Assembly (NCBI GenBank): GCA_002269645.1
Contig: NIVC01000051.1
Coordinates: 434,001 to 498,000 of the forward strand
DNA length: 64,000 bases
Source of the DNA: Macrostomum lignano
Lineage: Eukaryota
Direction: 5' to 3'
Of the stretch, positions 9,665 through 54,919 are shown one piece after another. A program made the position numbers and the translations under genes. The notes beneath the pieces were generated by a model. That model was not told where the DNA came from. It saw nothing but the letters and a program-made list of their open reading frames with translations, and ran no database searches. Each line of letters opens with the position of its first letter. The first letter of the stretch is position 1.

Positions 9665-10957
9665 ATGACCATTCGTAGACACATCAACAACTGCCGAATG
9701 GACAACATCGGTGAGTAAATTTGAATGTCACGTTGCAACATTCAGCAGACTTACGCCTTTACATGTATACATGCACCGTAGTCTGTTCTTGTACTTTAAT
9801 AGATTTAAAAAGCGAATTGCCCCCCCCATCTGCGAAACAATTAAGGACGAATTCGCGGTCTGCTGCTTATAATGCTGCTGGTTGTGGCATTGAAAGTGCT
9901 TCCCAGTCTGGTCAGAATTGAACTGGAGCAGTCTTGCGGACCCAAAACAGACTGCGGTCGGATTCCTGCTAAGAAGACTGCGCAATCAAATTTGCCAGAC
10001 GGGCTGCCTTGCAGCAAGCTGCCCTCCCAGTTCCCAGACTCCATCCCGCCGCTGGTGCACTGGACCAGCAAAGACGGCCGAGTTCCTAGTGAGATAATTC
10101 CCATTGTGCGCACATGGAGACGATTAACTAATGACAACGTCAACAAGGCCAGCTCAGAGAGCTGGCACTTCATGCACTGGGACGACAAGCAGATCTCCGA
10201 GCTCATCTCGAAGCACTATCCGTACCTTGTTCAAAGCTACCGCAAGCTGGTCAACGGGCTGGAGCGATCAGACATCGGCCGTCTGGTCGTGCTGCACCAC
10301 GTCGGCGGTCTGTACATCGACACTGATGTGGAGCTGCTTCGAGATCCGACACCGCTGCTGAGACCGTCGCAGCTTCAGGGAGTGGGGCTGACTCCGAACT
10401 TCGACTGTGAGTCAGCCGTGTGGAGTCAGGAGCCAATAGAGCATTCAATATTCATATTCAATATTGATTCAATGATTTCGAATGCTGTGATGATGAGCCG
10501 AGCGAATCACAGCTTCCTGAGCTTCGTGCTGATGAAATGGCCGTCCTGGTTCGAGAAGAATTGGGCCAATATCACACAAAGAACAGTCGATGATGCTGTT
10601 TTAGTGACTGGGCCAAAGATGCTGCAGTCATTCTACGATGAGTACACCATGCTGAAGCCGAGCGACAGACCTGCCGACTGGTGCGGCAACATGCTGGCTG
10701 AACCGGAGGCCTTCCAGCCAGTCAGCGATTGGGGCTACCTGCCAAGGATTATGCGGCAAATTTGCTCAGATGCTGGCCGGCTGAATGAGAGACAACGGCA
10801 ATATTGTCGGCGAATGGCTAAAGACGATTTTATGTCGAAGCGCATTCCCGACAGTACATTTACTTTGCATAACTTTTTGCACTTAAGCTATAGAGAGCGC
10901 ATGTTTATGTCTGTCTCATTTTCGTCTATAGTTCCTATACTTACTTGTACAATTTAG
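9665..10957 (+). CDS. GT32 glycosyltransferase paralog 1 (type II membrane, DXD). Predicted exons 9665-9710 and 9846-10957
   Basis: ORF 9872-10957 carries IPPLVHWTSK, RSDIGRLVVLHHVGGLYIDTDVE (DXD) and SNAVMMS. ATG 9665 through a phase-1 donor G|GTGAGT (9710/9711) joins acceptor TTAAG| (9845/9846) in frame, giving MTIRRHINNCRMDNIGRIRGLLLIMLLVV (cytosolic tail plus TM). Confidence 0.85.
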
Positions 10958-13329
10958 TGTTACTGATTCCACTTAAGACTGTTATTACTTAGCCATGACT
11001 TTTCTGACTTACATTAGCCAAACTGTGTCATAAACATAAACAGAATAGTAACAAGACAAACAACTTCCCTTTTTTCCACCTTCGTTCGTACTTCCATTAC
11101 AATTGAAATACTTGTTATGTCGATCAGAAAGACCGGGCCAAGTTGGAAAAAATCCTATGTCTTCCTTGTCTATTCATTTGTCTATAATAGCCAAAACGAC
11201 TTCGAACATGTTGATGGTCAATGTTAAAAATCATCATTTGGACGGGCAAAAGAAACGAAGTAAGAAAGGCTTAATTCACTTTATATGGTTTGGAATTCCT
11301 GCAGGACGCATTTAGTGGTCCCCTGCTCGCGTCGTTCGCCTCGACAATAACTTAAAGCTTTTGGTCAGCATAGACATAGATATTAATATAGAAATAGGCA
11401 TAGAAATAGGCAAGGATATAGACATACAAGTAGACATTGACAGTTCGACAAGCAAATTGAGAATTTGACATTTACTGTCATTTCGCCTAGCTCGTAACCC
11501 CACTCTCTGCATACGAAATCGCACTCCCTGCGAGTTCTGCTGATCGAAAGCCGGCTCAAAGACACGGTGAACGGTGGCGCCTCTGTCAAAAATGCTGCTA
11601 GGGTGCTCGAGGGCATCCGCCCACCGGATCATAAAGCTGCACAGGGAGGAGGGAAGAGATGAGTCGTTGCCACGAGGCGGCCGAAAGGACGCGAGCTGGT
11701 AGGTTGACAACGAGACGCGGGAATTCCTCAATACAGAAGTGTACGGAAGTGGACGACGAGTTAATCAATTTTTGGATGGCCTTCAATTTATAGACAAGAC
11801 GCTCCCAGGGCCGCAGTTTGAAAGGGACGAAATTCTTGCGAACTGTCTCCACGCAGCGAGGGCCATGCAAATGTGACAGTGTGCATGGCCCCTTGATAGA
11901 CTGGCCACATTTCCACCGCGCGGCTCGCATTCCGCAGCAGCCTCAGCACCGCATTTCGCTGCACATCAATGCCGCCGTACTCGCCACTCCTAATAAGAGC
12001 TTTCTAATGTATTTTTTCATTAATTTTTGTCAATTCTATTCGCCAACTCTTTGCTAAAGGCAGCAATCAAAAGCCGCCTGACGCAGCCGGACGTTGTCGG
12101 AGAGGAAGCAGGTGCCCCCGGCGGCATCAGCCAGGAGGAATGGAGGTCTATGTTGTTGGAGCGGGTGGCGAGAGAGTCGCTGGGCGTGGCTGTTACAGCG
12201 GAGGAGGTTGCCTGGCGATGCAGCCATTCTGAGCATTGCATTCTGCGTTGTCCTGCTTCCTGGTTTCAGCATGCATTCTGAGCTGCATCTTAATCTTTAA
12301 CTTCTCTCTGCGTTGCATTTTCGGCTTATTCTCTGTGAAGGAATGACATTCTTGCACGCTTTTGCGTCCAGGAACGGAATGTCTATCTATGGTAAAATCT
12401 CACTGAAAAAGCATTAGGCGTAGAAATGCATTCCTGCACGGTTTTGTGCATTGTTGTACGATGACTCTCACTCGTCCAACAATGGTATTCCTTCACGTTC
12501 ACTCGTGAGCGAAGAACATCATGCACGAGTGCGCGCTCTAGCAGGAATGAATTATTTGGCAGCAGTTGATTCGGTCTGGCCCATAGACATAGAGATAAAC
12601 AAAAGGCAAGCAAGTAAGTTTATATAAATGCACCTAGGTTCATACATGTGCATATAGATGCAATGGTACATATACCTGTAAATGCACGCATGCGGAATAT
12701 AAAACTCGAGCATAGATCTTATGTTCCTAAGATAAACCACTCTCAATGCATTCAATAGGAAGACCGACCATGCAAATTGCAAGAAAAAATTAATTAAGCC
12801 AACGGCGTTTGAGACAAGTCTGTCAGTAGTTTAAAGGGACATAGACATATTTTTGCCGTGGTTGCAAAAATATTCGCAACAGACACAAAGTTCGCCAGTC
12901 CTTGCTTCCTTGCGTTTTGCTATCAAACAAATTGGCAAAATAGCGCTGAATTCGAGGAGCTGCAGCTGTGTTCGGGGCTGCAGCACACATACACATGTAA
13001 AAGTGATGGAGTCCAACATCTAGCTGCACAATTTGCTGAAACTTTCTGATGTTTATCGTTTCTTGTATTTCGTTTACATGTTTAACTGTTTTGTTTGAAT
13101 TACGATTTTTCATTCGCTGGTTCAATTGAAATACACATCATTAGCAAGAATTATACTGAAAATAGCTAAATATGCCTTAAAAAAACTTAATACGCGCACA
13201 AGCTACTGACCTGATACCGTGGTCGCTAAATTCTTTTCAAGAAATACAAAGGCTCTATGGGTATGCTTTTGTGGTAGCTGAGTGGCGTATCTAGGGAATA
13301 TAAGATCTATGAACTCGAGTCAAATATTT

Positions 13330-15623: not shown

Positions 15624-17517
<1,894 letters not shown>

Positions 17518-19343: not shown

Positions 19344-20668
19344 ATGCCAAGCCAAAAGTTACAATTTCCATGCTGTTGTTTGAGTACTGGTGAGTGGCCG
19401 CCCTTGTTGATACACATCACTTATGCTCGTACAATAGTTGCAGTTGAGAAAAACTGAACTTAAAAACAAACCTAAAACTTGGAATTCGAGAGACCATCAT
19501 CTTTTACGCTGATACACAGCTCTGTTTCGTAATTCATAAATGAAGCAAAACTTTTTCAAATAAAATCCCAGCAGCCAACAAGTGGAAATCGTTCCTCCTG
19601 ATCCTGGTGGCGTCGGTGCTGCTCTGCCTGCTCAGCGCAAACTGGACTTCGCAGTCGATTTTTAGCTACAAGTGGCAGTGCGGCGAGCTGCCCTACCGCT
19701 TCCCGGACTCCATCCCGCCGCTGGTGCACTGGACCAGCAAAGACGGTCGAGTGCCAGCCAAGCTGATTCCCATTGTGCGCTCATGGAGGCGACTGCTCGA
19801 TGTCAGACTCAACGATAGCAGCAGCGCTGACAGAAACAGCTCGAATGCTGACGAATTCCCCACTGACCGCTGGCACTTCATGCACTGGGACGACAAGCAG
19901 ATCTCCGAGCTCATCTCGAAGCACTATCCGTACCTTGTTCAAAGCTACCGCAAGCTGGTCAACGGGCTGGAGCGATCGGACATCGGCCGTCTGGTCGTGC
20001 TGCACCACGTCGGCGGTCTGTACATCGACACGGATGTGGAGCTGCATCGAGATCCGACACCGCTGCTGAGACCGTCGCAGCTTCAGGGAGCGGGGCTGAC
20101 TCCGAACTTCGACTGTGAGTCAGCCGTGTGGAGTCAGGAGCCTACTGAGCACGCAGTCTTCACGTTCAATCTTCCGGCACTGATTTCGAATGCGGTGATG
20201 ATGAGCCGAGCGAAACACAGCTTCCTGAACTTCGTGCTGAAGAACTGGCCGGCATGGTTCAATCAGAATTGGGCCAAGAAAGTCTTTCGATCTCATCTTG
20301 ATGCATTTCGCGTCACGGGACCCAGAATGCTGCACACATTCTACGAGAAGTACACGGCTCTGAAGAAAAGCGACCGACCTGCCGACTGGTGCGGCAACAT
20401 GCTGGCCGAGGCAGACGCCTTCCAGCCCATCTGGGACGTGGCATGGATTCCCGACAGACTAAAGTCGCTGTGCAAAAAAGCGGAAAAGCTGTCTCCATTG
20501 CAGCGTCGTCACTGCAAGCGTCTGAATGGCACAAAGTTTTCCACGAAACAGATTCCTAATCGCTCTTTTACTGTGCACAGATTTATGCATCTTAGCTACA
20601 GGGGCAGATTGCGGATGGCAACTTCGCCTATATCATCGATTTTACCGATTTTCGGTTGCAGATTATAA
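19344..20668 (+). CDS. GT32 glycosyltransferase paralog 3. Predicted exons 19344-19389 and 19572 (or 19575)-20668
   Basis: ORF 19607-20668 with GT32 core. ATG 19344 (MPSQKLQFPCCCLST), phase-1 donor G|GTGAGT (19389/19390) and a tandem CAGCAG acceptor give an in-frame join to NKWKSFLLILV. Confidence 0.85.
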
Positions 20669-21190: not shown

Positions 21191-21854
21191 CTCTCACTAA
21201 GAGACACAGAAGCGTTATTATCAAGGTTGGTGCTAACGGGATACTAAGTATACATGTGAGCAAATTATGACAGTTGAAGGATCAATAGAAGTGTATACAT
21301 TTTATAGCTTTTTTTATTAGAATTAATTGTAATTGTTCGGAAGCTAAGAGCAATACTTTCTAATATTATTTTGTTGATTAAATGGATTTTAAATTTTACA
21401 AAAGCTAATTGTACATGTAGGACAATTGTACTGTACAATCGAAATTCTTAATCATAATTTTGCTCGCAAAAAGAAGACTGTACTTTACTACTACTGCCAG
21501 TAATAGCACGTGACGAAGCAATTTTTTAACGAGTTTTCAAATCTGGCTTAGCACTTGAATATCTGAGCTGCTTTTTACAATGGAAAACTATTGCTATAAT
21601 TGTTTGTCGAAAATCAAGACATCCCGATCTTTGTAATGCATTTTGCGTACACAGCGACCATACAATTTTTTTCTGAGTAGATATGAAGTTTCTCACTTTA
21701 TTTTAAGTTAAGCTACGAGTATTCAGAAAAATTCCCATATAATTTAATACGGAAGCGTAATTTTGTCGGTCTTAGTTGCTATCCAATTTCTTTTACTTTG
21801 TTTTCATTAGCGGTACGAGCTATGGCGAACCTTGGCGGAATTTCATTTAAATAA

Positions 21855-23878
21855 GTGCCATTTCAGTTGAGAGAGCGCCAGTTTAGTTAGGTTGAGTGTC
21901 ATTTTAGTTAAGGTAGTGCCATTTCAGTTGAGGGAGTGCCATTTCAGTTAAGGGAGTGCCATTTCAGTTGAGGGAGTGCCATTATAGTTGAGGGAGTGCA
22001 ATTAATTGAGGGAGAGCCATTTCAGTTGAGGGAGTGCCATTATAGTTGAGGGAGTGCCATTTTAATTAAGGGAGTGCTTTTTCAGTTGAAGGAGCGCCAT
22101 TATAGTTGAGGGAGTGCCATTTTAATTGAGGGAGTGCTTTTTCAGTTGAGAGAGCGATATTTTAGTTGAAAGAGCGATATTTTAGTTGAAGTAGTGCCAT
22201 TTCAGTTGAGGGAGCGTCATTTTAGTTGAGGGAGTGCCATTTCAGTTGAGGGAGCGCCATTTTAGTTAGGTTGAGTGTCATTTTAGTTAAGGTAGTACCA
22301 TTTCAGTTGAGAGAGCGCCATTATAGTTGAGGGAGTGCCATTTTAATTGAAGGAGTGCCATTTCAGTTGAAGGAGCGCCATTATAGTTGAGGGAGTGCCA
22401 TTTTAATTGAAGGAGTGCCATTTCAGTTGAAGGAGCGCCATTATAGTTGAGGGAGTGCCATTTTAATTGACCGAGTGCCATTTCAGTTGAGGGAGTGATT
22501 TTTCAGTTGAGGGAGCGTCATTTTAGTTGAGAGAGCGATATTTTAATTGAGGGAGCGCAATTATAGTTGAGGTAGTGCCATTTTAATTGAGGGAGTGCCA
22601 TTTCAGTTGAGGGAGTGCTTTTTCAGTTGAGGGGCGTCATTTTAGTTAAGAGAGCGATATTTTAGTTGAAGTAGTGACATTTCAGTTGAGGGAGCGTCAT
22701 TTTAGTTGAGGGAGTGCCATTTCAGTTGAGGGAGCGCCATTATAGTTGAGGGAGTGCCATTTTAATTGAGGGAGTGCCATTTCAGTTGAGGGAGCGTCAT
22801 TTTAGTTAAGAGAGTGATATTTTAGTTGAAGTAGTGCCATTTCAGTTCAAGGAGCGCCATTTTAGTTGAAGTAGTGCAATTTCAGTTGAGGGAGCGTCAT
22901 TTTAGTTGAGGGAGTGCCATTTCAGTTGAGGGAGCGCCATTATAGTTGAGGGAGTGCCATTTTAATTGAGGGAGTGCCATTTCAGTTGAGGGAGCGTCAT
23001 TTTAGTTAAGAGAGCGATATTTTAGTTGAAGTAGTGCCATTTCAGTTGAGGGAGCGTCATTTTAGTTGAGGGAGTGCCATTTTAATTGACCGAGTGCCAT
23101 TTCAGTTAAGGGAGTGCTTTTTCAGTTGAGGGAGCGTCATTTTAGTTGAGAGAGCGATATTTTAGTTGAAGTAGTGCCATTTCAGTTGAGGGAGCGCCAT
23201 TATAGTTGAGGGAGTGCCATTTTAATTGACCGAGTGCCATTTCAGTTAAGGGAGTGCCATTTTAATTGACCGAGTGCCATTTCAGTTAAGGGAGTGCCAT
23301 TTCAGTTGAGGGGCGTCATTTTAGTTGAGAGAGCGATATTTTAGTTGAAGTAGTGCCATTTCAGTTGAGGGAGCGTCATTTTAGTTGAGGGAGTGCCATT
23401 TCAGTTGAGGGAGCGCCATTATAGTTGAGGGAGTGCCATTTTAATTGACCGAGTGCCATTTCAGTTAAGGGAGTGCTTTTTCAGTTGAAGGAGCGTCATT
23501 TTAGTTGAGAGAGCGATATTTTAGTTGAAGTAGTGCCATTTCAGTTGAGGGAGCGTCATTTTAGTTGACGGAGTGCCATTTCAGTTGAGGGAGCGCCATT
23601 ATAGTTGAGGGAGAGCCATTTTAATTGACCGAGTGCCATTTCAGTTAAGGGAGTGCTTTTTCAGTTGAAGGAGCGTCATTTTAGTTGATAGAGCGATATT
23701 TTAGTTGAAGTAGTGCCATTTCAGTTGAGGGAGCGTCATTTTAGTTGAGGGAGTGCCATTTCAGTTGAGAGGCGTCATTTTAGTTGAAAGAGCGCTATTT
23801 TAGTTGAAGGAATGGCATTTCAGTTGAGGGAGTTCAACTTTAGTTGAGGGAATGCCATTTCAGTTGAGGGAGCGCCAT
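21855..23878. repeat. 20-bp minisatellite (consensus TTCAGTTGAGGGAGTGCCAT), about 100 units
   Basis: Continuous 20-bp periodicity with variant units. Confidence 0.97.
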
Positions 23879-24738: not shown

Positions 24739-27345
24739 ATGTGGCTCAGACTTCAACGAATGCTAGTATGGAGGCATCGTACGATAGGTAGGTATTGACT
24801 CGCATTATAAAACGATTATAAACATGCTTTTTGCTTTATACCTTTCTCTACTTCTGAGTGGTCGCCATTTCATCTGAGTGGGTGCCACTTCATCTGAGTG
24901 GTCGCCATTTCATCTGAGTGGGTGCCACTTCATCTGAGTGGGTGCCACTTCATCTGAGTGGGTGCCATTCCATCTGAGTGGGTGCCATTCCATCTGAGTG
25001 GGTGCCATTTCATCTGAGTGGTCGCCATTTCATCTGACTGGGGTGCCATTCCATCTGAGTGGGTGCCATTTCATGTGAGTGGGTGCCATTCCATCTTAGT
25101 GGGTGCCATTCCATCCGTAGGCGCCATGCCCTCAGCTTGCCCCCCTGGTGGCTCCCGACCCTGTGCGGCACTTTGATCACCAACCGGTTGGTGAACTCTT
25201 GTGACAGCTGAATCACCAAGTGAAATTTTTTTAGCCTACAGTGCCTACTTCTGAATATGCAGAATGAGTGCATCATCGATAGACGATAGATAGGGTTACC
25301 GGGTCCCAGCGAGAGACAGGGTTACCGGGTTCCAGCGAGAGACAGGGTTATCGGGTCCCTGCGAGAGACAGGGTTACCGGGTCCCAGCGAGAGACAGGGT
25401 TACCGGGTCCCAGCGATAGACAGGGTTACCGGGTCCCAGCGAGAGACAGGGTTACCGGGTCCCAGCGATAGACAGGGTTACCGGGTCCCAGCAGAGACAG
25501 GGTTACTGGATCCCAGCAGAGACAGGGTTACCGGGTCCCAGCAGAGACAGGGTTACCGGGTCCCAGCAGAGACAGGGTTACCGGGTCCCAGCAGAGACAG
25601 GGTTACCGGGTCCCAGCAGAGACAGGGTTACCGGGTCCCAGCAGAGACAGGGTTACCGGATTCCAGCAGAGACAGGGTTACTGGATCCCAGCAGAGATAG
25701 GGTTACCGGGTCCCAGCAGAGACAGGGTTACCGGGTCCCAGCAGAGACAGGGTTACTGGATCCCAGCAGAGATAGGGTTACCGGGTCGCAGCGAGAGACA
25801 GTGCCAATGCCGCGCCAAGAGACTTTTGGATTAGGGTTATCGGTGGCCTTATCGAGACACCGAAGAGGGAGTAAAGAGAGGAAAGCTCATTAAGAGACCT
25901 ATTGAGAACGAGACATTAGTGAAACTTAACCATTTTTAATTAGTCGCTTTCTTTATATTTATTACACCTTTGTAAATCATTGAAAAACGTACGATTCTTG
26001 CTATACTTAAAAACAAATTTTAGCTGCCAAACGCGCCGTGTTCTCCTTTCTGGTTTCTGCTTCCGCGCTGTACCTGTTTCTTGGTTTCACTAGCACCACC
26101 TGGGAGACTGTCACATACAAATACAATGTGGACCTGGACAGCCTTAGGAATTGTAGCGACATAATCAGTACTCAGGAATTGTTTCCAAACTCCATCCCGC
26201 CGCTGGTGCACTGGACCAGCAAGTCTGGACGAGTGCCAGCCAAGCTGGTTCCCATTGTGCGCTCCTGGAGGCTACTGCTGAATATCAGAATCAATAACAG
26301 CAGGAACTTCTCTGCAGGTCTGGCTCTGTCCGTGACTTTTGTCACCAAATTTGCTCTTACAACACTAGCTTACGAGTATTCTATCCGTTTTGGCAGTGAA
26401 CTTTACAGACTATTAACATTTTATAATAAACACTTAGGTGACCAACTGGCTCTGCTCAAGTCAAATAATCTGCAAGACTTCGGCACCGGCAATGGCAGCA
26501 TCACTAACGGAAGTAACAAGGACGTAGACAGCTTTTCAACAGATCGCTGGCACTTCATGCACTGGGACGACAAGCAGATCTCCGAGCTCATCTCTAAGCA
26601 CTATCCGTACCTTGTTCAAAGCTACCGCAAGCTGGTCAACGGGCTGGAGCGATCAGACATCGGCCGTCTGGTCGTGCTGCACCACGTCGGCGGTCTGTAC
26701 GTCGACACGGATGTGGAGCTGCTTCGAGATCCGACACCGCTGCTGAGACCGTCGCAGCTTCAGGAAGCGGGGCTGACTCCGAACTTCGACTGTGAGTCAG
26801 CCGTGTGGAGTCAGGAGCCAATAGAGCACGCCGCTTTCCCGTTCGACCTTCCGGCACTGATTTCGAATGCGGTGATGATGAGCCGAGCGAATCACAGCTT
26901 CCTGAGCTTCGTGCTAACAAACTGGCCGCCGTGGTTCGAGCAGAATTGGGCCAAGAAGAGGGGTAGAAAAAGCATTGACGCAGTGCACGTCACGGGACCC
27001 GTAATGCTACAGAAATTCTATAAGAAGTACACGGCACTGAAGCAGAGTGACCGACCTGCCGACTGGTGCGGCAACATGCTGGCAGAGCCTGGGGCGTTCC
27101 ATCCTTTGAATGACGTGGCCTACGTGCCAAAAAGATTGAAAACCGCCTGCGCGAAGCCTGAAAAACTTTCCAAACTGCAGAAGCAGTTTTGCAGCCCATT
27201 AACGATATCAAATCTTGAGCTGAAGCAGATTCCAAATACTTCTTACACAGTGCACAAGTTTATGCATTTGAGTTATCGCGAAAATAATTTTAGTAATTCC
27301 ATTCGAATCTCCTCGATTGTACCAATTTTCCGCTGCAAAGTTTAA
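24739..27345 (+). CDS. GT32 glycosyltransferase paralog 4. Predicted exons 24739-24787 and 26024-27345 (possible extra intron 26318-26437)
   Basis: ORF 26038-27345 with GT32 core (YVDTDVE). Phase-1 acceptor TTTTAG| at 26023/26024. Candidate first exon ATG 24739 (MWLRLQRMLVWRHRTI) with phase-1 donor G|GTAGGT at 24787/24788. Confidence 0.8.
24859..25120. repeat. 20-bp minisatellite (TTCATCTGAGTGGGTGCCAT), about 13 units
   Basis: Direct tandem copies. Confidence 0.95.
25293..25801. repeat. 24/26-bp minisatellite (AGAGACAGGGTTACCGGGTCCCAGC[GA]), about 20 units
   Basis: Direct tandem copies; 26-bp units mostly at the left, 24-bp units at the right. Confidence 0.96.
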
Positions 27346-28398: not shown

Positions 28399-28600
28399 GG
28401 CGGCTGGAGGCGCGCTGCTAGGCCCAACTAGGTAGTAATATATAGAATATGTGCACACGAGAGCCCGTCTACTGAGAATATCTATGGCCAAAAAACCATT
28501 GGCTCAGTACAAAACTGCTTCGCAGCCGCCAGTACCGTATTCGTAAATCGAATTTTCTTATGAATGCCAAAGGCACACCGCCGTTAAATTAATTCCGTCT

Positions 28601-29091
28601 TACACCATTTTACCCTCGATTTTGAACAAGGAGAACTTCGAAACTGACAAACTCCTCTTCAATATTGACACTCTATGGTCGGGCACTCAAAATCTACAAT
28701 CAATATTGACAGATCAAGCTTCGATTTCAAAATAGAATCGGACTTTGCAGCCCAACCAGTCAGGCTATTTTAGTCTGTGTGTAAAGGATGGAGAAAAATA
28801 AATTTTATCAATACTTGTAGATCCAAAAAGCAAAGTCAGAATAAGCTGATTTTGCACAGCTCACTTCAGCCCCGTTCAGGCTTTCATTGGATTACTTTGT
28901 TACCGAACTCTCCCAGGAGAAGTTGACTAAACGTGCATTGTCAAAATTGAACCAGAGTTTGTCAAAATTGAAGCTTGATCTGTCAATATTGATTGTAGAT
29001 TTTGAGTGCCCGACCATAGAGTGTCAATATTAAAGAGGAGTTTGTCAGTTTCGAAGTTCTCCTTGTTCAAAATCGAGGGTAAAATGGTGTA
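28601..29091. mobile_element. MITE with ~125-bp near-perfect TIRs, TA at both ends (Tc1/mariner-like)
   Basis: TACACCATTTTACCCTCGATTTTGAACAAGGAGAAC... is mirrored by ...GTTCTCCTTGTTCAAAATCGAGGGTAAAATGGTGTA. Confidence 0.85.
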
Positions 29092-29133
29092 ATAATTAAC
29101 CGAGCGGTTAAGGCCAGGTTTAGGGCCAGTAAT

Positions 29134-31741: not shown

Positions 31742-32594
31742 GCTGGCGCCCCTGGTGCTGGCGCCCCTGGTGCTGGCGCCCCTGGTGCTGGCGCCCCTGG
31801 TGCTGGCGCCCCTGGTGCTGGCGCCCCTGGTGCTGGCGCCCCTGGTGCTGGCGCCCCTGGTGCTGGCGCCCCTGGTGCTGGCGCCCCTGGTGCTGGCGCC
31901 CCTGGTGCTGGCGCCCCTGGTGCTGGCGCCCCTGGTGCTAAAGCCCCTGGTGCTAAAGCCCCTGGTGCTGGCGCCTCTGGTGCTGGCGCCCCTGGTGCTA
32001 AAGCCCCTGGTGCTAAAGCCCCTGGTGCTAAAGCCCCTGGTGCTGGCGCCCCTGGTGCTAAAGCCCCTGGTGCTAAAGCCCCTGGTGCTAAAGCCCCTGG
32101 TGCTAAAGCCTCTGGTGCTAAAGCCCCTGGTGCTAAAGCCCCTGGTGCTAAAGCCCCTGGTGCTAAAGCCCCTGGTGCTAAAGCCCCTGGTGCTAAAGCC
32201 CCTGGTGCTAAAGCCCCTGGTGTTAAACCCTCTGGTGCTAAAGCCCCTGGTGCTAAAGCCTCTGGTGCTGACGCCCCTGGTTCTGGCGCCCCTGGTGCTG
32301 GCGCATCATGGTGCGCACACACCAGCAGCGACTGGGAGCGGCCAAGTTCTGCGACTTCAAAGTTGGTGACAAGGTGCGGCTTCGCAACGAGCGCCGTGAT
32401 GATCGCAAAGGTGGAAAAATGTCGTACCAGGAAAAATTAGGCTGGCGCCCCTGGTGCTGGCGCCCCTGGGGCTGGCGCCCCTGGTGCTGGCGCCCCTGGG
32501 GCTGGCGCCCCTGGTGCTAAACCCTCTGGTGCTGACGCCCCTGGTGCTAAAGCCTCTGGTGCTGACGCCCCTGGTTCTGGCGCCCCTGGTGCTA
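31742..32594. repeat. 15-bp minisatellite (TGCTGGCGCCCCTGG / TGCTAAAGCCCCTGG) in two blocks, 31742-32300 and 32441-32594
   Basis: Direct tandem copies. The GCG variant dominates at the left and the AAA variant at the right of the first block. Confidence 0.97.
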
Positions 32595-33813: not shown

Positions 33814-35046
33814 ATGTTTACAGATTACATCGCTGTTTCTAATACTAGAATGCTTATCCGTTGGACAAGGCCCGGCAAAAGCCGAAGCATGTTGCTCATT
33901 CTGACGCTGCTATCTGCATTCAATCTGCTTCTTCTTACGAATTTAATGGCGGAAAAGTTCTTTAAGCCCATCGAATGTCTCGATGACACGGATCCCGCGG
34001 ACAACTCAACGATAAACATTACACGGCTAACGCCTTCACCCTTCAGTCGAACTTGTGGCGAGCTGCCCTACCGCTTCCCGGACTCCATCCCGCCGCTGGT
34101 GCACTGGACCAGCAAAGACGGTCGAGTGCCAGCCAAGCTGGTTCCCATTGTGCGCTCATGGAGGCGACTGCTCGATGTCAGACTCAACGATAGCAGCAGC
34201 GCTGACAGAAACAGCTCGAATACGGACGGATTCCTCGCTGACCGCTGGTACTTCATGCATTGGGACGACAAGCAGATCTCCGAGCTCATCTCAAAGCACT
34301 ATCCGTACCTTGTTCAAAGCTACCGCAAGCTGGTCAACGGGCTGGAGCGATCGGACATCGGCCGTCTGGTCGTGCTGCACCACGTCGGCGGTCTGTACAT
34401 CGACACGGATGTGGAGCTGCTTCGAGATCCGACACCGCTGCTGAGACCGTCGCAGCTTCAGGAAGCGGGGCTGACTCCGAACTTCGACTGTGAGTCAGCC
34501 GTGTGGAGTCAGGAGCCAATAGAGCATCCAGTGTTCCTTTTCAACCTAACCTCGATGATATCGAATGCGGTGATGATGAGCCGAGCGAATCACAGCTTCC
34601 TGAGCTTCGTGCTGAAGAACTGGCCGAAATGGTTCGAGCGGAATTGGGCCAGGAGAGTGAACAGGACCCACTTCGACGCGGTAATGGTGACCGGGCCCAT
34701 AATGCTGCAGGCATTCTACAAACGATATGCCTCGCTGAAGCCGAGCAGCCAGCCAGCCGACTGGTGCGGCAACATGCTGGCCAGGGGTGACGCATTCCAG
34801 CCCATCTGGGACGAGGTATTCGTTCCCAAGAAGCTGATCAAGTTCTGCCAGAGGCCGGACAAGCTTCTAAAAGTTCAACGTCGCCACTGCAAGCGTCTGA
34901 TTCGTCAAAAATTCCAGACGAAGCGCATTCCGAAGAGCTCGTACACGGTGCACAGGTTCCTGCACTTGAGCTACTCGGACAGCATGGATCTGGCCTGCAG
35001 TTTAAACATATCGTCAATTTTGCCAATTCTCAAATGCAAGCTGTAG
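33814..35046 (+). CDS. GT32 glycosyltransferase paralog 5
   Basis: 410-aa ORF with TM (MLLILTLLSAFNLLLL) and GT32 core. A phase-1 acceptor TTTACAG| (33823/33824) is present, but no first exon was identified. Confidence 0.85.
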   Translation: MFTDYIAVSNTRMLIRWTRPGKSRSMLLILTLLSAFNLLLLTNLMAEKFFKPIECLDDTDPADNSTINITRLTPSPFSRTCGELPYRFPDSIPPLVHWTSKDGRVPAKLVPIVRSWRRLLDVRLNDSSSADRNSSNTDGFLADRWYFMHWDDKQISELISKHYPYLVQSYRKLVNGLERSDIGRLVVLHHVGGLYIDTDVELLRDPTPLLRPSQLQEAGLTPNFDCESAVWSQEPIEHPVFLFNLTSMISNAVMMSRANHSFLSFVLKNWPKWFERNWARRVNRTHFDAVMVTGPIMLQAFYKRYASLKPSSQPADWCGNMLARGDAFQPIWDEVFVPKKLIKFCQRPDKLLKVQRRHCKRLIRQKFQTKRIPKSSYTVHRFLHLSYSDSMDLACSLNISSILPILKCKL

Positions 35047-35771: not shown

Positions 35772-35839
35772 AAAATGTGTAGTGTTAAGATATTTTGAAA
35801 GTAAATAATCCGCTGCAACGAATCCTGCTGCTGGTAGTT

Positions 35840-36500
35840 GCACCCGTCGGCCGGCACAGCTTGGATGGTATTGTTCGTGAATTAACGGCTCCCCTAACTG
35901 GAGTGACTGAAAGGTACACTAATCAGTCTCTACGCAAGACTTGCGCAAGTACTCTACACCGTGCTGGCTTCGCTAGAGAGGACGTCGCTCATGTTACAGG
36001 ACACTCTTCGACAGCTATTGAGCGCTATATTCAGTTTGACGTACAAGACCATGTTAAAGTGCACTTCTGGTCTTCTTGTGGTCAGTCATCAAGTCCGTTC
36101 ATTGCAACCGAGCCTGAACGCTCTGTTGAAGCTATGGAACAAAGCAACGTAGTGAGTGCTAATCCTGCAAAGAAAAGGAGGCTTAACATCAACGGTAACA
36201 CTAACACTGTTGAAATCGTCTTTGAGGGAGTGCTTAGAAAAGGCTTCTATTTCTTACTATGCTGAACTTAATTTTGCTGTTGGTTTTGTTAGTTTACATT
36301 CGTTAAATACAACTGTAGCAGGACTGAGAAATATTGAATATTGAATGGCACGAAACGAAGAAAGCGGCCTGGTGCACTGGAGGTGGATCCTCGCTAATGG
36401 TTTGAAGGAGATCAGCGAACTGTCGAAGATTGATCTAAATTACCTCCTTAAAAGTTTCATTCTGGAGGTGCGTACAAAGCCTATATATTGAAGGTCATTT
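35840..36500 (+). pseudogene. Crypton-type tyrosine recombinase (DUF3504-like) fragments
   Basis: PVGRHSLDGIVREL..YTNQSLRKTCASTLHRAGFAREDVAHVTGHSSTAIERY matches the YR box II (H/Q-x-x-R, GH, catalytic Y). A second piece, ISELSKIDLNYLLKSFILEVR (~36400-36480), resembles the Crypton N-terminal helix. Confidence 0.75.
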
Positions 36501-37431: not shown

Positions 37432-38321
37432 AATATACCTTTTAACAGTTTTTTGGACATAAGTGAAGTTTATTTAGTCTTTGGCCAGCTCAGTCCTCGA
37501 AAAAAGAGTTTGGTTTAGTCAGCATTCGGGGTTTACCATAAACTATAGTAAAGAAATGAAATCGATTTAGTTAAGTGCCACGTATTTAAACCCTTTCATG
37601 ACAAGATTTTAGTCAAAGTGAATTTTATTTTCATGGCGGCAGCTGCAGGCATTCGCAGAGTCACCATCTCTGAGCAGGACCGGCGAAGACCCATCGACGC
37701 CTTTATTGGAAATGCCGATTGGCAGCAACCAGGGAGACAGCTAAACATCCAACGTCAGTCTGCCAGAACACCAGAACTCTACAAGAACACCGCGCCCGCA
37801 TTCTTGAGCGTGAACTGGAGGCCAGTATATTGCAGCTGTCACACAGCCTCACTGCGAAGCCTGGCATCGTGAGAGCCTTCGGTACATACCCCGCTACATT
37901 GCCATGGGAAGACATCGTTGATTGAATTGAAGAGTGAAGCGTCGTAACAATAATTTGTTGTGTCTGTGTTCGTTTGTATTGTTCTTGTTTAACTACTCGT
38001 GCATGTATCTTATCAAAGCTAACGACTAAATAAAATTCACTTTGTAACTTTTGTAAGTTACAAAAGTTACACTTTTGTTACACTTTTGAAAACAAAAGTT
38101 TCAAAAGTTTCAAAAGTGTACACTTTTGAAAAACTTTTGAAAAGTTTCACTTTCGTAACTTTTCAGAATTTAGCGGAACTTGACTAAATCGATTTTATTT
38201 CTTTACTATAGTCTATGGTAAACCCCGAGTGCTGACTAAATCAAACTCACTTTTCTAGGACTGAGCTGGCCGAAGACTAAATAAACTTCACTTATGTCCA
38301 AAAAATGTTAAAAGGTATATT
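37432..38321 (+). mobile_element. Internally deleted IS630/Tc1/mariner-like transposon with ~145-bp TIRs
   Basis: 37432-37577 is mirrored by 38177-38321. Internal fragments: RVTISEQDRRRPIDAFIGNADWQQ..QLNIQRQSAR (HTH-like) and WHRESLRYIPRYIAM.DIVD (Tc1-like C-terminus). A further TIR fragment lies near 53464-53510. Confidence 0.65.
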
Positions 38322-43622: not shown

Positions 43623-46600
43623 CGCTACGTCAACGGACGTAGGCGGCCACAACAGCACCGTGGCCGCGGTCATGGGCATCGCCTCTACCCGGCGACCCGG
43701 ATGGTCGGACAGCTACGACCGTGCCAAGATGCCCAACCCTAGGCAACCGCCTCCCCCGGTACGCGACTACGTCACGACCGCGGTGCGAGGCGACGATCAC
43801 TTCCTGGTGTCCAGACATGTCATCATCGTCATCAGCCTCTTTTTCTGGCTCGAAAGGGGGCGAAACAGGCGGCGAAACCCCGGGCCCGACTGCGACTGCT
43901 GCGGTCGCCCCATCAGAAGAGGCTCGAATTTCCTCTCCTGCCAGTCCGGTCAGTGCCCCACCCGCTGCCACAAGCAACCATCTTGCAGCGGCATCCGCCG
44001 ATACCAACAGAACCAACGCTGGCTCTGCCAACAACACGGCGGACCAGAGCGCACCCCCGCAACCCGCCAACCGCGGAGGCAGCTACCCCCGGCAACTGCA
44101 GTGCCTGCTCGGGCCCAATCCGCTCCGGCACCACTCCGCTACGGTGCGCAACCGCCGGCTGCACGTCAACCTGCCACCGTACAACCAAATGCAACAGCAT
44201 CCCGCGCTTCAAGGGCTGCCCTCGCTGGCGCTGCCCCGTCCACACCCCACCTGCGGTGAGGTCCCTGGCCGGCCGCCCGATCGCGGATAGGCGCCCCGCG
44301 GATGCCGACCACCCCCGCCCGCCGACTCAAGACTCCGGCTGCTGCAGCGGGTGCTACTCTCTCTTCCGCTCTAACCACCACCCCATCGCCTGCCGTCAGT
44401 GTAATGCTAAGTTCCACAAGAAATGCACCCGTCTCACCAGGCTCGCGGCCGACCTGGCTGCCACCCAGGGTCACTGGACCTGCCCGGCCTGCACCTCATC
44501 ACAGGCGGCACACGAAACGGCAGCCACTAACCAGACCACGACTCAGGCCCGGATTTCCACCCAGCGCGCCTGCCTCCGCACCACGACCCGCCAGGAATCC
44601 CTGCTGACTCTTCAGTGGAATGCGGACGGCATCTCAACCCGGGTCGCCGAGCTGGCAAACTGCATCAACTCTCTCAAACCAGACCTGATCCTGATCCAGG
44701 AGTCCAAACTGCGCCCGCAGGACCCCACCCCCTGCCTCCATGGTTACGCCGCGGTTCGGGTGGACCGCAAGCGGCCGGACGGCGGAGGTGGGCTGCTCAC
44801 ATTCATACGGGACTGTCTCGCATTCGAACGCAAGCCGGTGACGACCCGCGAGCCAATCGAAGCCTGCCGCGTGCGTATCTTTCTGAGCTCCAAGAAATCC
44901 CTGGACGTGGACAACGTGTACGTCCCGCCTGTCCGTGGCGGCGAAGAACACGGCGAGGTACCAACGGACGCCGACCTGCTCGCCGGCGACTTCAACGCCC
45001 ACTCGGCCATCTGGGACCAGATCCAACCGGCCGATGGTCGTGGCGACACCCTGCTGGACTGGGCCAGCGAACATGGCCTGACGGTCGTGAACGACGGCTC
45101 ACCAACCAGAATTAACCGCGGTACAGGCGGCGAGAGCACCCCAGACGTATCGCTTTGCCGCAACGCTTGGCATCACCGCACCTCTTGGAGTACCCTCGAC
45201 GACCTCGGCTCCGACCACCTCCCAATCGCCATCAACCTCCGCTGCACCACCGAAAATCTCCATCGTCAGACCAGGACTTTCTGGAGAAGCACCGGGGTGG
45301 ACTGGACGGCGTTTGCCCAGGACGTCGACTCGCAAGTCGCCACCTTCAAAAGCACCGGCGTCTCATTCAAACAACGAGCCAGCCGCCTCACGGAGGCCAT
45401 CATAGCATCGGCACACCGCCACGTGGGGAAAAAGTCCTCTAAACGTCCAGCCCGGCCCTGGCTCTCCCAGGAGGCTCGCGAGGCCATCCGCAAGCGCAAT
45501 CGCCTTCGCAGAGACGTCAGTAACCGCCGCGCCGAATGGCTCCAAGCCTGTGCGGACGCCGCTACGCTCTCCCGCGAGAGCAAGGAGAAGAGCTGGCGGG
45601 AATTCCTGTGCGACACCGACCTATGCCAAGATGCCACCAAGGCCTGGCGCCTCGTCCGCAGCCTCAGCGGTACCTCGGGTGACAACGCCACTAACGAGGC
45701 CCTGTCCGTCAGAGACAAAACCTACTGCGACGACGCGAGTAAGGCTGAGATCTTCATCAAGCACTACGCGGCGGTCAACCGTCTCCACTTCAACAAAGCC
45801 GACCGCGCCGTCAACCTCTCCGCTAAGTCTGCCGTACGCGCCTGCGACACCAACCAGGAGGCTGAAGAGTGCGCCCTATTTTTGGAACACGAGCTCGACG
45901 CGGCCATCAAGCAACAACGAGCCACTGGCGCCCCCGGCCCGGACGACGTCTCGCCGCGCTTCCTCAAGGCCTTGGGCCCCATCGCCAGAGCCGAGCTCCT
46001 CGCACTGTTCAACCAGTCTTTCTCCAGGGGCATCGTGTCACAGTGCCACCATCATTCCGCTGCTCAAGAAGGGCAAGCCACCCGGCGACTTGGCTTCCTT
46101 CCGCCCGGTCAGCCTCACCTCCTGCGTTGTCAAGCTGCTGGAACGCATGATGACCGCGCGCCTCACCTTCTTGGCTGAGTCCCGCGGCTGGCTCTCACAA
46201 CAGCAGGCCGGCTTCCGCCGACTCCGCAGCTGCGAGGACCAAATTCTGTCAGCTGTCCAGAGCATCAGCGACGGCTTCCAGAACTCGCCCATGCTGCGCT
46301 CCATCATGGCGTTTCTCGATTTTAGTAAAGCCTATGACAAAGTCTGGATTGAGCGCCTACTCCTCACTCTCATCGAGAAAGGTGTACCAGGGATCCACAT
46401 CCGGTGGGTCCGCGCCTTTCTCAGCAACCGCCAAGCCCGCGTGTGCGTCAACGGCACCAACGGACGCTACCGCCGGCTTCGCCAAGGGCTCCCGCAGGGC
46501 TCAGTCATCACCCCGCTGCTTTTTATTGTTTCTTGACCCTGTGGTGTCGGCCATCCCGGCGCAAGTTGACGCCCTGATGTACGCTGACGACATCGCCCTC

Positions 46601-48320
46601 CGCAGCCAGAGCAACGACGTCGCAACAGCTACACTCGTCCTCCAAGACGCGGTCGACTGCATCGCGAACTGGAGCCGAGCCAACCACATGGTGCTGAACC
46701 CGACCAAAAGCGAATGCGCCCTGTTCACTACCGACCCGCATCAGGCCGCCCTCCAGCCCAGCATCTGCCTCAACGACACTACCATTCCGTTCTGCAGCAG
46801 CCCTCGTTTCTTGGGCGTCTATCTCGACCGCACGCTTTCCTTTAGCAAACAGGTATCCGAAGTTTGCAGAACAGTCGGCAACCGCTGCCGTCTCCTAGCG
46901 TGCCTCGCTGCCAGGTCGTGGGGCTGGTCTAAAGACAGTCTCCTAACTACCTTCAAAGCAATGCAACTCAGCATCCTGCACTACGCGTCACCAGCATGGC
47001 AACCCTGGCTGGCAGACACCGCCATGTCTCATCTCCAACGCGCGCAGAACCAGGCACTCCGTATTGTCACAGGTCAGCTTCGCACAACCCCGGCTGAGGC
47101 TCTCCACCTCGAGGCTGGAGTGTGCACCGTCGCTACCATGCGCGACCAACTCTGCCTCGCGGCGTACGAAAAAGCGCTGCGCCTCCCGGAGGACCACCCG
47201 CGCCACCGCGCGGCCGCGGCCCAGGTTCCGCACCGCACGGCCAGAAACAGCTGGCGCCACCGCGCCCAGCAACTTCTGGCAAGAATGCCGGGAAACCTGG
47301 GCCACCGCGAAGCCCTCCCACCGCTCCCCCGCTGCCCTTGGATCCACCTGGCGGCGGGCTGGACCGTGACCCGCTTGCTGTCGACCGTCGCCGTCAGACC
47401 CAGGCAGGCTGCTCACCCGACGACGCAACAAGACAGCGCTGACTTAGCCAGGGACCAGGCGATATCATCCATCCGCACGGCGAACGCTGACCTGGTTCTT
47501 TACACGGACGGCTCCGCCGAAGGCGGCTGCTCCGAGGGGGGCGCAGCATGCGTGGTTACCCGCGGCGACCCTGCCACCCCGCAGGTCGTCGACACCGTCG
47601 CTGCCCGCGGCGCCTCGCCGACCTGCAGCTTCGACGAGGAGCGCCGCGCCCTCGGACTGGCCATGGCCTGGCTCAACGACCATCAAGTCACCGGCCGAGT
47701 GTTGATCTGCTCCGACAGTCGCGCACTGCTCGACGCCCTCATGAGCATCGTGCCGAGATGCTCGCTCCCGGACTTGAACTGCCGGGTTGCCTCCCTCACT
47801 CTCCAGTGGATCCCAGCGCACTGCGGCATCCCTAGTAACGAGATGGCGGACGCAGCCGCCAAGAATGCCGCATCCATCGCTGGCGCGCCAGCGAGCACCT
47901 CGTACAGCAGCGCGGTGGCAGCGGTCAGGCGCGAGATCGGCGACCCGCCCCTGACCCATGCCCGCACGATTTCTGTGTACCGCGCGCTCAACCGGCAACG
48001 CGACCGCGCCGAACTTCAGAATCGTCAGAATGCCGTCCTCCTGGCGAGGCTCCGCGCGGGCCACTGCAGCCTTCTCCGTGCGTACAGTCGCATCGTCAAC
48101 CCGACGGCGGACCCCATTTGCCCACGCTGCGAGGAGGGCCCGGAAGACCTCGAGCACTGGCTCGGTTGCCCGGCCCTCCGGAGGCTCCGCCTCGAGCTGT
48201 TCGACGAGGACACCCTGGACCCCGGGATTCTGACCGTCGCCCCCGCGAGGTCGGTGGCGCTTGCGAGGCGAAGCCGCTGACTCCCTCGGCGCCTTTGCCC
48301 CAACAACAACAACAACAACA
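43621..48320 (+). mobile_element. Full-length Ingi-like (I-group) non-LTR retrotransposon: 2 PHD-like fingers, APE endonuclease, RT, RNase H, CCHC; three frameshifts
   Basis: QWNADGI..LIQESKL..LAGDFNAH..SDHLPI (APE); FRPVSLTS..QQAGFR..FLDFSKAYD..QGSV and YADD (RT); LYTDGS..ICSDSRA..WIPAHCGIPSNEMADAAA (RNase H); CPRC..HWLGC. It has a (CAA)n tail at 48301-48320 and (CAG)n on both sides. Confidence 0.92.
43664..43735 (+). ncRNA. HDV-like self-cleaving ribozyme fold at the 5' end of the Ingi-like element
   Basis: P2 UGGGCAUC(43673-80)/GAUGCCCA(43728-35); P3 GCC/GGC around a 7-nt loop UCUACCC; P1 GGUC(43668-71)/GACC(43694-97); J1/4 GG; P4 AUGGUCG/CGACCGU; J4/2 GCCAA. P1 is short and L3 deviates from consensus. 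Confidence 0.6.
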
Positions 48321-50422: not shown

Positions 50423-50463
<41 letters not shown>

Positions 50464-51712: not shown

Positions 51713-51940
51713 TCTGTTACGACAGCACACAATGCGGTGATCCAATTAATAACTGGCAAATCATATGTACAGGCTTCTGTCCAGTTCGACTCCATCGCTG
51801 CTGCCGCCGCTCAATAAAATTAAATCCACACTTAGTATTTTAGGTAAATACTTATATTTTGAAAGGTAAAGCAGTCAATCAATCAATTCATCGATTATAC
51901 TAATAGTAGTAGCAGTAGTGATTCTTTTCAAAACCATCTA

Positions 51941-52040
51941 ACTGACGCGTCTGCCCCATTAGAAAGCTATGCACTGACGACTCTGCCCCATTTAAAGCTA
52001 TGCACTGACGCCTCTGCCCCATTTAAAAGCTCTACTGAAG
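51941..52040. repeat. Three 31-32-bp direct repeats upstream of the Rep-like gene, with further copies near 52262 and 52310
   Basis: ACTGACG(CG/AC/CC)TCTGCCCCATT..AAGCT at 51941, 51973 and 52004; ACTGACGCGTTTGCCCCATTTAA at 52310. Confidence 0.85.
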
Positions 52041-53395: not shown

Positions 53396-54919
53396 ATGGC
53401 CAATGGACTAAAGCGATATTGTACCCCAGGTGAGTATGTACTCGTTTGGATCAAGTGGGCACAAATATACCTTTTAACAATTTTTTGGACATTAGTGAAT
53501 TTTATTTAGTCTGACTGACTAGCCAACAACAGTGCTACGTACCGAAAGACAAACATCTGTTAATTTGATCTATCGATACTCGAAAGCCGCCGCAATCGAC
53601 GACTCTAGCGCTGGGTACAGAATCAAGAAATACTGAAGTTCCATGGCAAGTTAGTATAGCTGTGTCTGTGATTAGTGGAATAGTCGGGTTATACATGTAA
53701 TAGGTCGAGAAGTATTGTTAAAGAAGGCTGCAGTAAAAGGTGGCTAGAACAAGCCTTCAATTGACCGTATAGACCCCTCTCTCTGGCAACGCCCTTGACT
53801 GCAACTATACCTGTGATTACCATCTATATCTTTTTAGCGAATAGCCGAAAACTGATGCTTCTAATAATACTGACGATTGCGATACAGCTGATAATCTATC
53901 TAAATAAAAGGCCAACTACAAATACTCAATCAGAATGGCAAAACGATTCGTCAGCCTTAAAGAATTCAAGTTGCAGCGAGCTGCCCTCCCAGTTCTCGGA
54001 CTCCATCCCGGCGCTGGTGCACTGGACCAGCAAAGACGGCCGAGTGCCAGCCAAGCTGGTTCCCATTGTGCGCTCCTGGGCACGGCTGAGTAACGGTAGC
54101 CGAATCCAGGCCTGGCACTTCATGCACTGGGACGACAAGCAGATCTCCGAGCTCATCTCGAAGCACTATCCGTACCTTGTTCAAAGCTACCGCAAGCTGG
54201 TCAACGGGCTGGAGCGATCGGACATCGGCCGTCTGGTCGTGCTGCACCACGTCGGCGGTCTGTACATCGACACGGATGTGGAGCTGCTTCGAGATCCGAC
54301 ACCGCTGCTAAGACCGTCGCAGCTTCAGGGAGTGGGGCTGACTCCGAACTTCGACTGTGAGTCAGCCGTGTGGAGTCAGGAGCCTACTGAGCACGCAGTC
54401 TTCACGTTCAATCTTCCGGCACTGATTTCGAATGCGGTGATGATGAGCCGAGCGAATCACAGCTTCCTGAGCTTCGTGCTAACAAACTGGCCGCAATGGT
54501 TCGAGCAGAATTGGGCCAGTAACACCAAGAGAGTTCATAACGATGCGGTGCACGTCACGGGACCCAGAATGCTGCACACATTCTACGAGAAGTACACGGC
54601 TCTGAAGAAGAGCGACCGACCTGCCGACTGGTGCGGCAACATGCTGGCCGAGGCAGACGCCTTCCAGCCCATCTGGGACGTGGCATGGATTCCTGACAGA
54701 CTAAAGAAGCTCTGTCTAGCACCAGAAAAGCTGTCTAAGCCGAAACAGGACCATTGCAAGCGACTGAACCGCACAAAGTTCGAGACGAAACAGATTCCGA
54801 ATGGTTCCTACACGGTCCACAGGTTTATGCATTTGAGCTACACGCATAACATGCTAACTTCTAGTGCTTTGGAAATTTCTTCAATTTTACCTATTATAAA
54901 CTGCAACCTGAACTTTTAA
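53396..54919 (+). CDS. GT32 glycosyltransferase paralog 6. Predicted exons 53396-53429 and 53838-54919
   Basis: ORF 53795-54919 with GT32 core. ATG 53396 (MANGLKRYCTP), phase-1 donor CAG|GTGAGT (53429/53430) and acceptor TTTTTAG| (53837/53838) join in frame to NSRKLMLLIILTIAIQLIIY (TM). Confidence 0.87.

Follow-up and report, generated by a model that had tools for sequence, protein, structure and literature searches.

Near-identical catalytic cores in a GT32 glycosyltransferase cluster of Macrostomum lignano point to short-tract gene conversion between old paralogs

We analysed a stretch of 64,000 nucleotides (nt) from the genome of Macrostomum lignano (NIVC01000051.1:434001-498000, assembly Mlig_3_7, GCA_002269645.1), referred to below as the window, which contains six open reading frames (ORFs) of glycosyltransferase family 32 (GT32, PF04488). 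All six lie on the + strand within 45 kb and encode 353-435 amino acids (aa), and we named them G1 to G6 in order along the window. Each gene holds a core of 272 nt, from WHFMH to VWSQEP, that is almost the same in all copies down to its synonymous sites, while the coding sequence on either side has diverged strongly. We consider it very likely that the linked copies are still exchanging short tracts by interlocus gene conversion, which is restricted to conserved blocks of the genes, and that these blocks also serve as the junctions of chimeras.

A homogenized core and two smaller blocks

The two motifs that bound the core each occur exactly six times on the + strand of the window, whereas the number expected by chance is 0.14 for the 5' 15-mer and 0.00 for the 3' 17-mer. 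All six copies match the 17-mer without change, and five match the 15-mer, in which G5 has two mismatches. Averaged over pairs, nucleotide identity is 0.96-0.99 within the core, falls to 0.50-0.78 over most of the C-terminal half and is about 0.4, which is noise, between the genes. Nei-Gojobori estimates on a codon alignment of the six paralogs gave a synonymous divergence (dS) of 0.04 and a nonsynonymous divergence (dN) of 0.01 for the 91 codons of the core, as opposed to a dS of 1.15 and a dN of 0.31 for the 172 codons of the C-terminal half, a contrast in dS of approximately 25-fold. Third codon positions tell the same story, 5 of 90 being polymorphic in the core and 189 of 248 elsewhere (Fisher P = 5e-34).

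An earlier note, made from the letters of the sequence, had described six nearly identical cores, synonymous sites included, between flanks that keep open frames and anchor motifs. Both descriptions are borne out, as the boundary motifs and the low core dS are found in all six genes, and the six ORFs are open, match PF04488 and contain the peptides that the note had quoted. The comparison of dS along the gene, which it had proposed as a check, gave values that are far from uniform along the gene (0.04 in the core and 1.15 in the C-terminal half). The note had also called the flanks hypervariable; strong divergence outside the core is real, but it is the ordinary divergence of old paralogs under purifying selection.

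Two further blocks are homogenized to a lesser extent. Block A (FPDSIPPLVHWTSKDGRV...PIVRSW), of about 87 nt, has a proportion of synonymous differences (pS) of about 0.2, and block C (ISNAVMMSRANHSFLSFVL), of 57 nt, has a pS of 0.09. The edges of the blocks are sharp, and a deeply diverged loop of 14 codons separates the core from block C. Homology between the paralogs ends at the coding sequence, and their intergenic and intronic DNA is unalignable. Because the intergenic DNA is thus unrelated, the duplications must be old, and the identity of the core is therefore secondary.

Exchange between the linked genes

The mosaic of low and high dS is absent from unlinked members of the family. P0004 and P0005, paralogs whose loci (L002 and L003) lie on contigs other than those of the cluster, share the motifs of the cluster genes, yet their cores are only 75% and 66% identical to that of G1 at the nucleotide level. 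Core dS between the cluster and either of these paralogs, and between P0004 and P0005 themselves, was 1.14-1.36 and thus as saturated as in the flanks, which shows that the synonymous sites of the core are not intrinsically protected.

The region from G1 to G4 is present in three collinear versions, W (the window), A (L001, NIVC01001938.1) and B (L004, NIVC01001789.1), that are 91-99.8% identical, which fits the three subgenomes described for the M. lignano line (PMC10733133). We built neighbor-joining trees from 14 cluster sequences of the three versions and 2 outgroups, these being subgenome copies of one line and not species. In the tree of the C-terminal half, sequences grouped by gene across versions and the branches between paralogs were deep (Jukes-Cantor (JC) distance 0.449). 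In the tree of the core, the JC distance between paralogs was 0.018 and orthology was broken, with B_G1 grouping with G2, and W_G3 standing apart from A_G3 and B_G3. Of 291 core sites, just 16 are variable across the 14 sequences. Variants at 10270, 10316, 10380 and 10383 are common to paralogs and yet differ between versions of one and the same gene; the G4 core has four diagnostic bases that are the same in W, A and B.

Using a self-written run test of the Sawyer type with 2000 permutations, we found significant tracts (global P <= 0.005) in five pairs of genes, G2-G3, G2-G5, G3-G5, G3-G6 and G4-G6. The tracts span 143 polymorphic sites in G2-G3, 43 in G3-G6 and 21 in G4-G6, and a run of 31 polymorphic sites is common to G2-G5 and G3-G5 (global P = 0.0005).

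One core carries a private residue. W_G3 alone has His for Leu (VELHRD, window 20036-20047), four residues past the DTD motif, where the other 13 sequences have Leu; at site 10338 (G1 coordinates) W_G3 has A instead of T. This His could be a real private substitution or an error of the consensus.

A chimeric gene and reassorted linkers

G3 is a chimera whose 5' part equals G2 and whose 3' part resembles G6. W_G3 and W_G2 agree at every base (100% identity) between about 19602 and 20118, beyond which identity drops to 78% and lower; over the stretch of about 570 nt that begins with exon 2 and closes with the core, G3 and G2 differ once. From there on W_G3 is 96-100% identical to G6 at 20119-20215 and again at 20316-20465, so that the 3' part of the gene alternates between tracts of 96-100% and of 56-84% identity to G6.

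The linker of G3 between block A and the core (19769..19868, + strand) is the site of a polymorphic non-allelic exchange. It is 100% identical to the linker of G2 in W and B and 100% identical to that of G6 in A, and the flanks of G3, which are allelic, are 90-100% identical between the versions. At the protein level the two variants read SWRRLLDVRLNDSSSADRNSSNADEFPTDRW versus SWARLSNGSRIQAW, and at the DNA level the swap is a structural difference of 100 nt with a length change of 48 nt. Since the same linker is of the G2 type in two versions and of the G6 type in the third, non-allelic exchange is polymorphic among the three. Across the cluster, the G2-type linker is combined with three different C-terminal halves and the G6-type linker with two different N-termini. 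As linker types are reassorted among genes in this way, the blocks are also junctions at which chimeras are created. Altogether, the dS contrast, the saturated cores of the unlinked paralogs, the loss of orthology in the core only, the significant tracts and the polymorphic exchange strongly support what the earlier note had suspected, namely gene conversion of the module that carries the DXD motif and the donor site.

Purifying selection on the flanks

We then considered the selection that acts on the variable parts. The dN/dS ratio of the C-terminal half is about 0.27 by distance, that of the flanks about 0.3-0.45, and the ratio of nonsynonymous to synonymous proportions of differences (pN/pS) is 0.37-0.49 for every pair of genes. 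In no window of 15 codons did pN exceed pS, although such a window-wise ratio is a weak test when dS is saturated. Between the three genome versions, the C-terminal half shows a pS of 0.02 and a pN of 0.004; for G1, 7 nonsynonymous and 10 synonymous differences give a ratio of 0.21, which shows that this gene is under purifying selection between the versions. The C-terminal halves of the cluster paralogs are also closer to each other (JC 0.449) than to those of the unlinked paralogs (0.585). The earlier proposal that the C-terminal half is actively diversified is thus unsupported, given a dN/dS of about 0.27, the lack of any window with pN above pS and a distance within the cluster that is lower than that to its unlinked relatives. 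The note's suggestion of a role in mucus, adhesion or a self/non-self glycocalyx is likewise unsupported.

Enzyme family and probable position of the donor site

All six genes match PF04488 with 41.5-44.5 bits against a gathering cut-off of 23 (E = 2.6e-11 to 2.3e-10), and the match covers the core. The DXD motif, here DTD, follows an SD..R..L..GG.Y motif, and ERSDIGRLVVLHHVGGLYIDTDVE is invariant in all copies. An exhaustive hidden Markov model search provided 62 distant relatives, whereas two word-indexed profile searches matched almost only M. lignano proteins. Identity to the relatives from outside Macrostomum is only about 22-30%, but D181, R184, G192, G193, Y195, D197 and D199 are invariant or nearly so among the 62, and the motifs IPxxxHxTW, SD..R..(L)..GG.Y.D.D, SQEP, NA.M..R..H.F and H.F/W.H are common to them and the cluster. 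From sequence, the six genes are thus putative Golgi-type GT32 glycosyltransferases with a GT-A fold and a DXD motif.

The profile of the 62 sequences matches yeast Och1 (9n3s_A) with E = 1.4e-20 over profile positions 45-219, whereas a search of the PDB with a shallow profile gave no significant match. The homogenized blocks coincide with the consensus motifs of the 62 relatives and with the donor-site region of Och1, in which conserved T, D, D..R and DxD residues line the GDP-mannose/Mn site (PMC12312940). By correspondence of motifs, block A and the core (block B) would carry these T, D, D..R and DxD residues of the donor pocket. The earlier assignment of the core to the donor side therefore stands, given the PF04488 coverage and the Och1 alignment, but the accompanying idea of separate donor and acceptor halves holds only roughly, because the C-terminal end of Och1 contributes to the contacts with donor and acceptor alike. 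A predicted structure of G5, based on an alignment of 8 sequences, had a predicted local distance difference test score (pLDDT) of 39.5 and a predicted template modeling score (pTM) of 0.27, too poor to confirm the fold.

Other assignments were rejected. Membership in the A4GALT/A4GNT subfamily fails on the absence of the Gb3_synth domain (PF04572), which gave no match in G5, P0004 or P0005 even at E <= 10 and matched only 1 of the 62 relatives, at 1.8e-4. The names attached to these sequences by their sources are automatic and contradict each other (A4GNT, alpha-1,6-mannosyltransferase, inositol phosphorylceramide (IPC) mannosyltransferase-like), and the UniRef name "alpha-1,4-N-acetylglucosaminyltransferase", likewise automatic, is unjustified without PF04572. 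The domain of bacterial GT44-type toxins (PF12919) matches just 21 residues about the DXD motif, with 11.7-13.2 bits (E = 0.05-0.16) where the gathering score is 23.6, and the profile matches to PDB entries are short and fall on nucleotide-binding motifs that are shared. The relationship is one of fold only, and the cluster genes are predicted to be ordinary animal type II membrane enzymes.

Proposed mechanism and alternative explanations

We propose that old GT32 paralogs, tandem or dispersed within 45 kb, exchange short tracts non-allelically, most plausibly by homology-dependent repair. Conversion would persist only at block A, the core and block C, where constraint on the protein may keep the DNA similar enough to pair, these three blocks being the ones that appear to carry the family-wide motifs of the nucleotide-sugar/metal site. 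Between and beyond the blocks, divergence to saturation would block heteroduplex formation, or selection would remove converted variants, or both; the sharp edges could accordingly be due to mismatches that limit heteroduplex formation or to selection that disfavors conversion in the segments that determine specificity. As conversion would persist where the blocks stay similar, the identity of the blocks would be self-perpetuating, and it has been argued that purifying selection keeps sequences similar and so sustains conversion (reviewed in PMC3924837). Exchanges that begin and end in the blocks would yield chimeric genes such as G3, with its G2 5' part and its G6-like 3' part, as well as reassorted linkers.

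Some points weigh against this interpretation. For conversion that depends on homology, blocks A and C offer little length (87 and 57 nt), and one has to assume either that tracts are very short or that selection disfavors converting the segments in between. The assembly was polished by Pilon with Illumina and RNA-seq reads (PMC5730564), and multi-mapping during polishing could distort single-site variants of the core and so weaken the argument from shared polymorphisms, although it leaves the 25-fold contrast and the 100-nt linker swap unweakened. The three genome versions stem from a single assembly, made from a single inbred line. Finally, GC content at third codon positions (GC3) is 0.76-0.78 in the core and 0.55-0.75 in the C-terminal half, but it is uninformative on biased conversion because the unlinked paralogs are also higher in the core (0.76-0.85 in the same block).

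Of the alternatives, the one that survives best is an addition to conversion and not a replacement for it, namely that diversification is modular and selected, with variable segments kept distinct and their reassortment favored, so that the locus would act as a glycan-diversification array. The sharp block edges and the divergent 14-codon loop between the core and block C would fit such a system, as would the reassortment of linker and C-terminal types among genes, the motifs, cysteines and open frames kept in all copies and the purifying selection on G1. However, the same edges are accounted for by a passive limit that sequence divergence sets on conversion, and no signal of positive selection was detected; we therefore regard this addition as unlikely. 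Slightly more doubtful still is a stronger form, in which the three blocks, more than passive remnants of homology, have been selected as junctions for a germline cassette system that keeps one donor-site module constant and reassorts stem/linker and acceptor-side modules among at least six genes and three subgenomes. If it were true, such a system would outpace point mutation as a source of new chimeric glycosyltransferases and, through them, of new glycans, whether secreted or on the surface.

An artefact of assembly or polishing, by which cross-mapped short reads or partial collapse of paralogs homogenized the core in the consensus only, is highly improbable. There are grounds for the concern, since Mlig_3_7 was assembled by Canu from PacBio reads and polished by Pilon with Bowtie2-mapped Illumina and STAR-mapped RNA-seq reads (PMC5730564), REAPR called only 64% of its bases error-free and three near-identical subgenome copies exist. 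Cross-mapping, however, presupposes near-identity and cannot turn a divergence of about 25-35%, as seen in the unlinked paralogs and the flanks, into one of about 1-2%. The same pattern occurs in three separately assembled contigs that have kept gene-specific core variants (the diagnostic bases of G4 in W, A and B), each 272-nt core lies within unique flanks, which long reads bridge, and a 100-nt linker swap with a length difference of 48 nt is a structural change that no polishing edit would make.

We give even less credence to constraint at the nucleotide level, in which the core would hold an element specific to the cluster, such as a small-RNA target, a structured RNA, an antisense transcript or an internal regulatory element. 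The identity does cover synonymous sites and its edges are sharp, but the synonymous sites of the core have diverged freely in the unlinked paralogs (dS 1.1-1.4), a scan of the whole window found no Rfam match and the predicted RNA fold of the core is unremarkable (z = -1.29). Three separate blocks would each require an element of their own, and selection alone leaves the loss of orthology, the shared polymorphisms, the reassorted linkers and the chimeric G3 unexplained. Least credible of all is a recent duplication (dS of about 0.04) followed by hypermutation or strong positive selection of the flanks, which would suit the strong amino-acid divergence of the C-terminal half and the N-terminal stem, but is at odds with flank synonymous sites that are saturated at a dN/dS of about 0.3-0.45 without any window of pN above pS, with paralog intergenic and intronic DNA that is unalignable, as befits old duplicates, and with genome versions that differ in the C-terminal half by a pS of only 0.02 and a pN of 0.004 and thus give no sign of current hypermutation.

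Gene models and other elements of the window

All six GT32 genes of the cluster are read on the + strand, and a tblastn search of the window detected no additional GT32 copies, whether as fragments or as pseudogenes. Only G2, G3 and G4 have gene models based on transcripts. G1 extends over 9872..10957 (ORF open from 9845; PF04488 E = 3.1e-11), with block A at 10031-10117, the core at 10163-10434, the DTD motif at 10319-10327 and block C at 10475-10531, and its ORF is intact in all three genome versions. The main coding exon of G2 lies at 16408..17517 (block A 16549-16635; core 16720-16991; block C 17035-17091). Its counterparts in L001 and L004 have transcript-based models (P0002 and P0165, respectively), while G2 is uncalled in the window contig. 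Annotation of this gene is thus uneven across the subgenome copies, the ORF being intact in the uncalled copy of the window, with one residue different. A microsatellite, (ATAG)161, occupies 15742-16386 with 100% matches, about 20-70 bp upstream of the G2 coding exon, and differs in length in the other genome versions, where it shows as alignment gaps.

G3 (PAA92476.1/P0164) and G4 (PAA92477.1/P0167) have transcript-based gene models with a short 5' exon and are the sole GT32 annotations in the window contig. Two loci retrieved through their exact proteins (L005 and L006) agree with the window at every base. G3 spans 19344..20668, with exon 1 at 19344-19388, exon 2 at about 19572-20668 and the core at 19871-20142. 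G4 spans 24739..27345, with exon 1 starting at 24739 and the core at 26548-26819; a canonical GT..AG intron of 120 nt interrupts its linker in frame at about 26318-26438, and the 40 residues that this intron encodes are missing from P0003 and P0167. The intron is stop-free and in frame in all three genome versions, so that the unspliced ORF reads through it with 40 extra residues. G5 lies at 33814..35046 (block A 34075-34161; core 34246-34517; block C 34558-34614) and has a linker of the G2 type. G6 lies at 53795..54919, with its first ATG at 53855, block A at 53993-54079, the core at 54113-54384 and block C at 54425-54481. Exact-product look-ups for G1, G5 and G6 returned no recorded product, and G5 has no called gene in the window contig.

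Several other elements are interspersed with the cluster. Between G5 and G6 lies a degenerate non-long-terminal-repeat retrotransposon of the long interspersed nuclear element (LINE) type (43953-48280, + strand), whose apurinic/apyrimidinic endonuclease, reverse transcriptase and RNase H domains are scattered across three or more reading frames. Its GC content is 0.61-0.65, compared with 0.42-0.49 around it. Just downstream of G5, a 156-aa ORF (35795-36265, + strand) gave a sub-threshold match to a tyrosine recombinase (phage integrase) domain (E = 4.9e-4; 20.4 bits versus 27.1) and, judging from this match, could be what is left of a Crypton- or DIRS-like element. A 419-aa ORF on the - strand (55266-56525), immediately downstream of G6 and opposite to it in orientation, contains an EME1/MUS81 C-terminal domain (PF21292, E = 7e-23); an exact-product look-up for this ORF gave no recorded product. 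Two pairs of inverted repeats look like the terminal repeats of small DNA transposons, one of 128 bp (28600-28727 and 28965-29092; 98% identity, about 240 bp apart) and one of 148 bp (37432-37579 and 38175-38321; 93% identity, about 600 bp apart).

Tandem repeats are also present. Three arrays of a related 20/21-bp unit with GCCATTTCA(G/A)TT, about 70% identical to each other, occupy 21854-23878, 24853-25115 and 58979-59791, two of them between G3 and G4. A 15-bp minisatellite (GCCCCTGGTGCTAAA) at 31748-32299, with 36.8 copies and 94% matches, gives rise to long spurious ORFs on both strands, and an 86-bp satellite at 60919-63129 comprises 25.7 copies of 98% identity.

Significance and comparison with known systems

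In the literature that we searched, neither this GT32 cluster nor conversion among Macrostomum glycosyltransferases is described, and a search by gene identifiers returned no papers. The cluster offers an unusually clean and quantifiable case of partial concerted evolution, with divergence falling 25-fold over 272 nt and one exchange caught while still polymorphic among the three subgenomes of a neopolyploid animal. For practical work, including the core spoils phylogenies, orthology calls and the dating of duplications for these genes, and a CRISPR guide, an in situ or RNA interference (RNAi) probe or a short-read mapping that relies on the core would hit all six copies. If the variable halves differ in acceptor specificity, the cluster would be a natural experiment in GT-A enzymes, with a fixed donor site and changing acceptor sites, in an animal in which RNAi and transgenesis are feasible.

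Among enzymes of its own family (yeast Och1, PDB 9N3S; animal A4GALT/A4GNT; fungal IPC mannosyltransferases), the cluster shares PF04488, the DXD motif and the type II membrane layout, but its genes differ from A4GALT/A4GNT in lacking the C-terminal Gb3_synth domain (PF04572). In organization it is reminiscent of the vertebrate UGT1A and GCNT2 clusters with variable first exons, where a constant donor-binding module is combined with several variable acceptor-side modules in one locus (PMC1885805). In UGT1A, however, variable first exons are spliced onto shared exons, whereas each GT32 gene holds its own copy of the constant module, kept constant by conversion; UGT1A evolves by birth and death with little gene conversion (PMC1885805), and it is a GT1 enzyme of the GT-B fold, in contrast to the GT-A fold of GT32. 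The human red/green opsins and RHD/RHCE resemble the cluster in the ongoing conversion of linked duplicates, with islands of divergence, hybrid genes and junctions in shared sequence (PMC3924837), but their geometry is reversed: in the opsins and RHD/RHCE small islands of divergence interrupt young duplicates that are otherwise similar, whereas in the GT32 cluster small islands of identity interrupt old duplicates that have otherwise diverged.

The closest parallel is provided by the protocadherin clusters of fugu, zebrafish and human, in which clustered variable exons undergo regional conversion (Noonan et al., 2004, PMC1852091). In both systems tandem paralogs have a region that is >99% identical, including synonymous sites, beside a divergent region that tells the paralogs apart, and in both conversion is lineage-specific and limited to linked copies, with the divergent part thought to carry specificity. 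The identical region of protocadherins is 3' and the divergent region 5' (PMC1852091), while the homogenized part of the GT32 genes is not the 3' half of a long exon but an internal catalytic block of 272 nt, with two mini-blocks, of a single-domain enzyme. The GT32 array is also small, with 6 genes over 45 kb and other genes and a LINE between them, and its variable part shows no signal of positive selection. The cluster is thus a clean instance of known regional conversion, closest to that of the protocadherins, and as such will not surprise a specialist.

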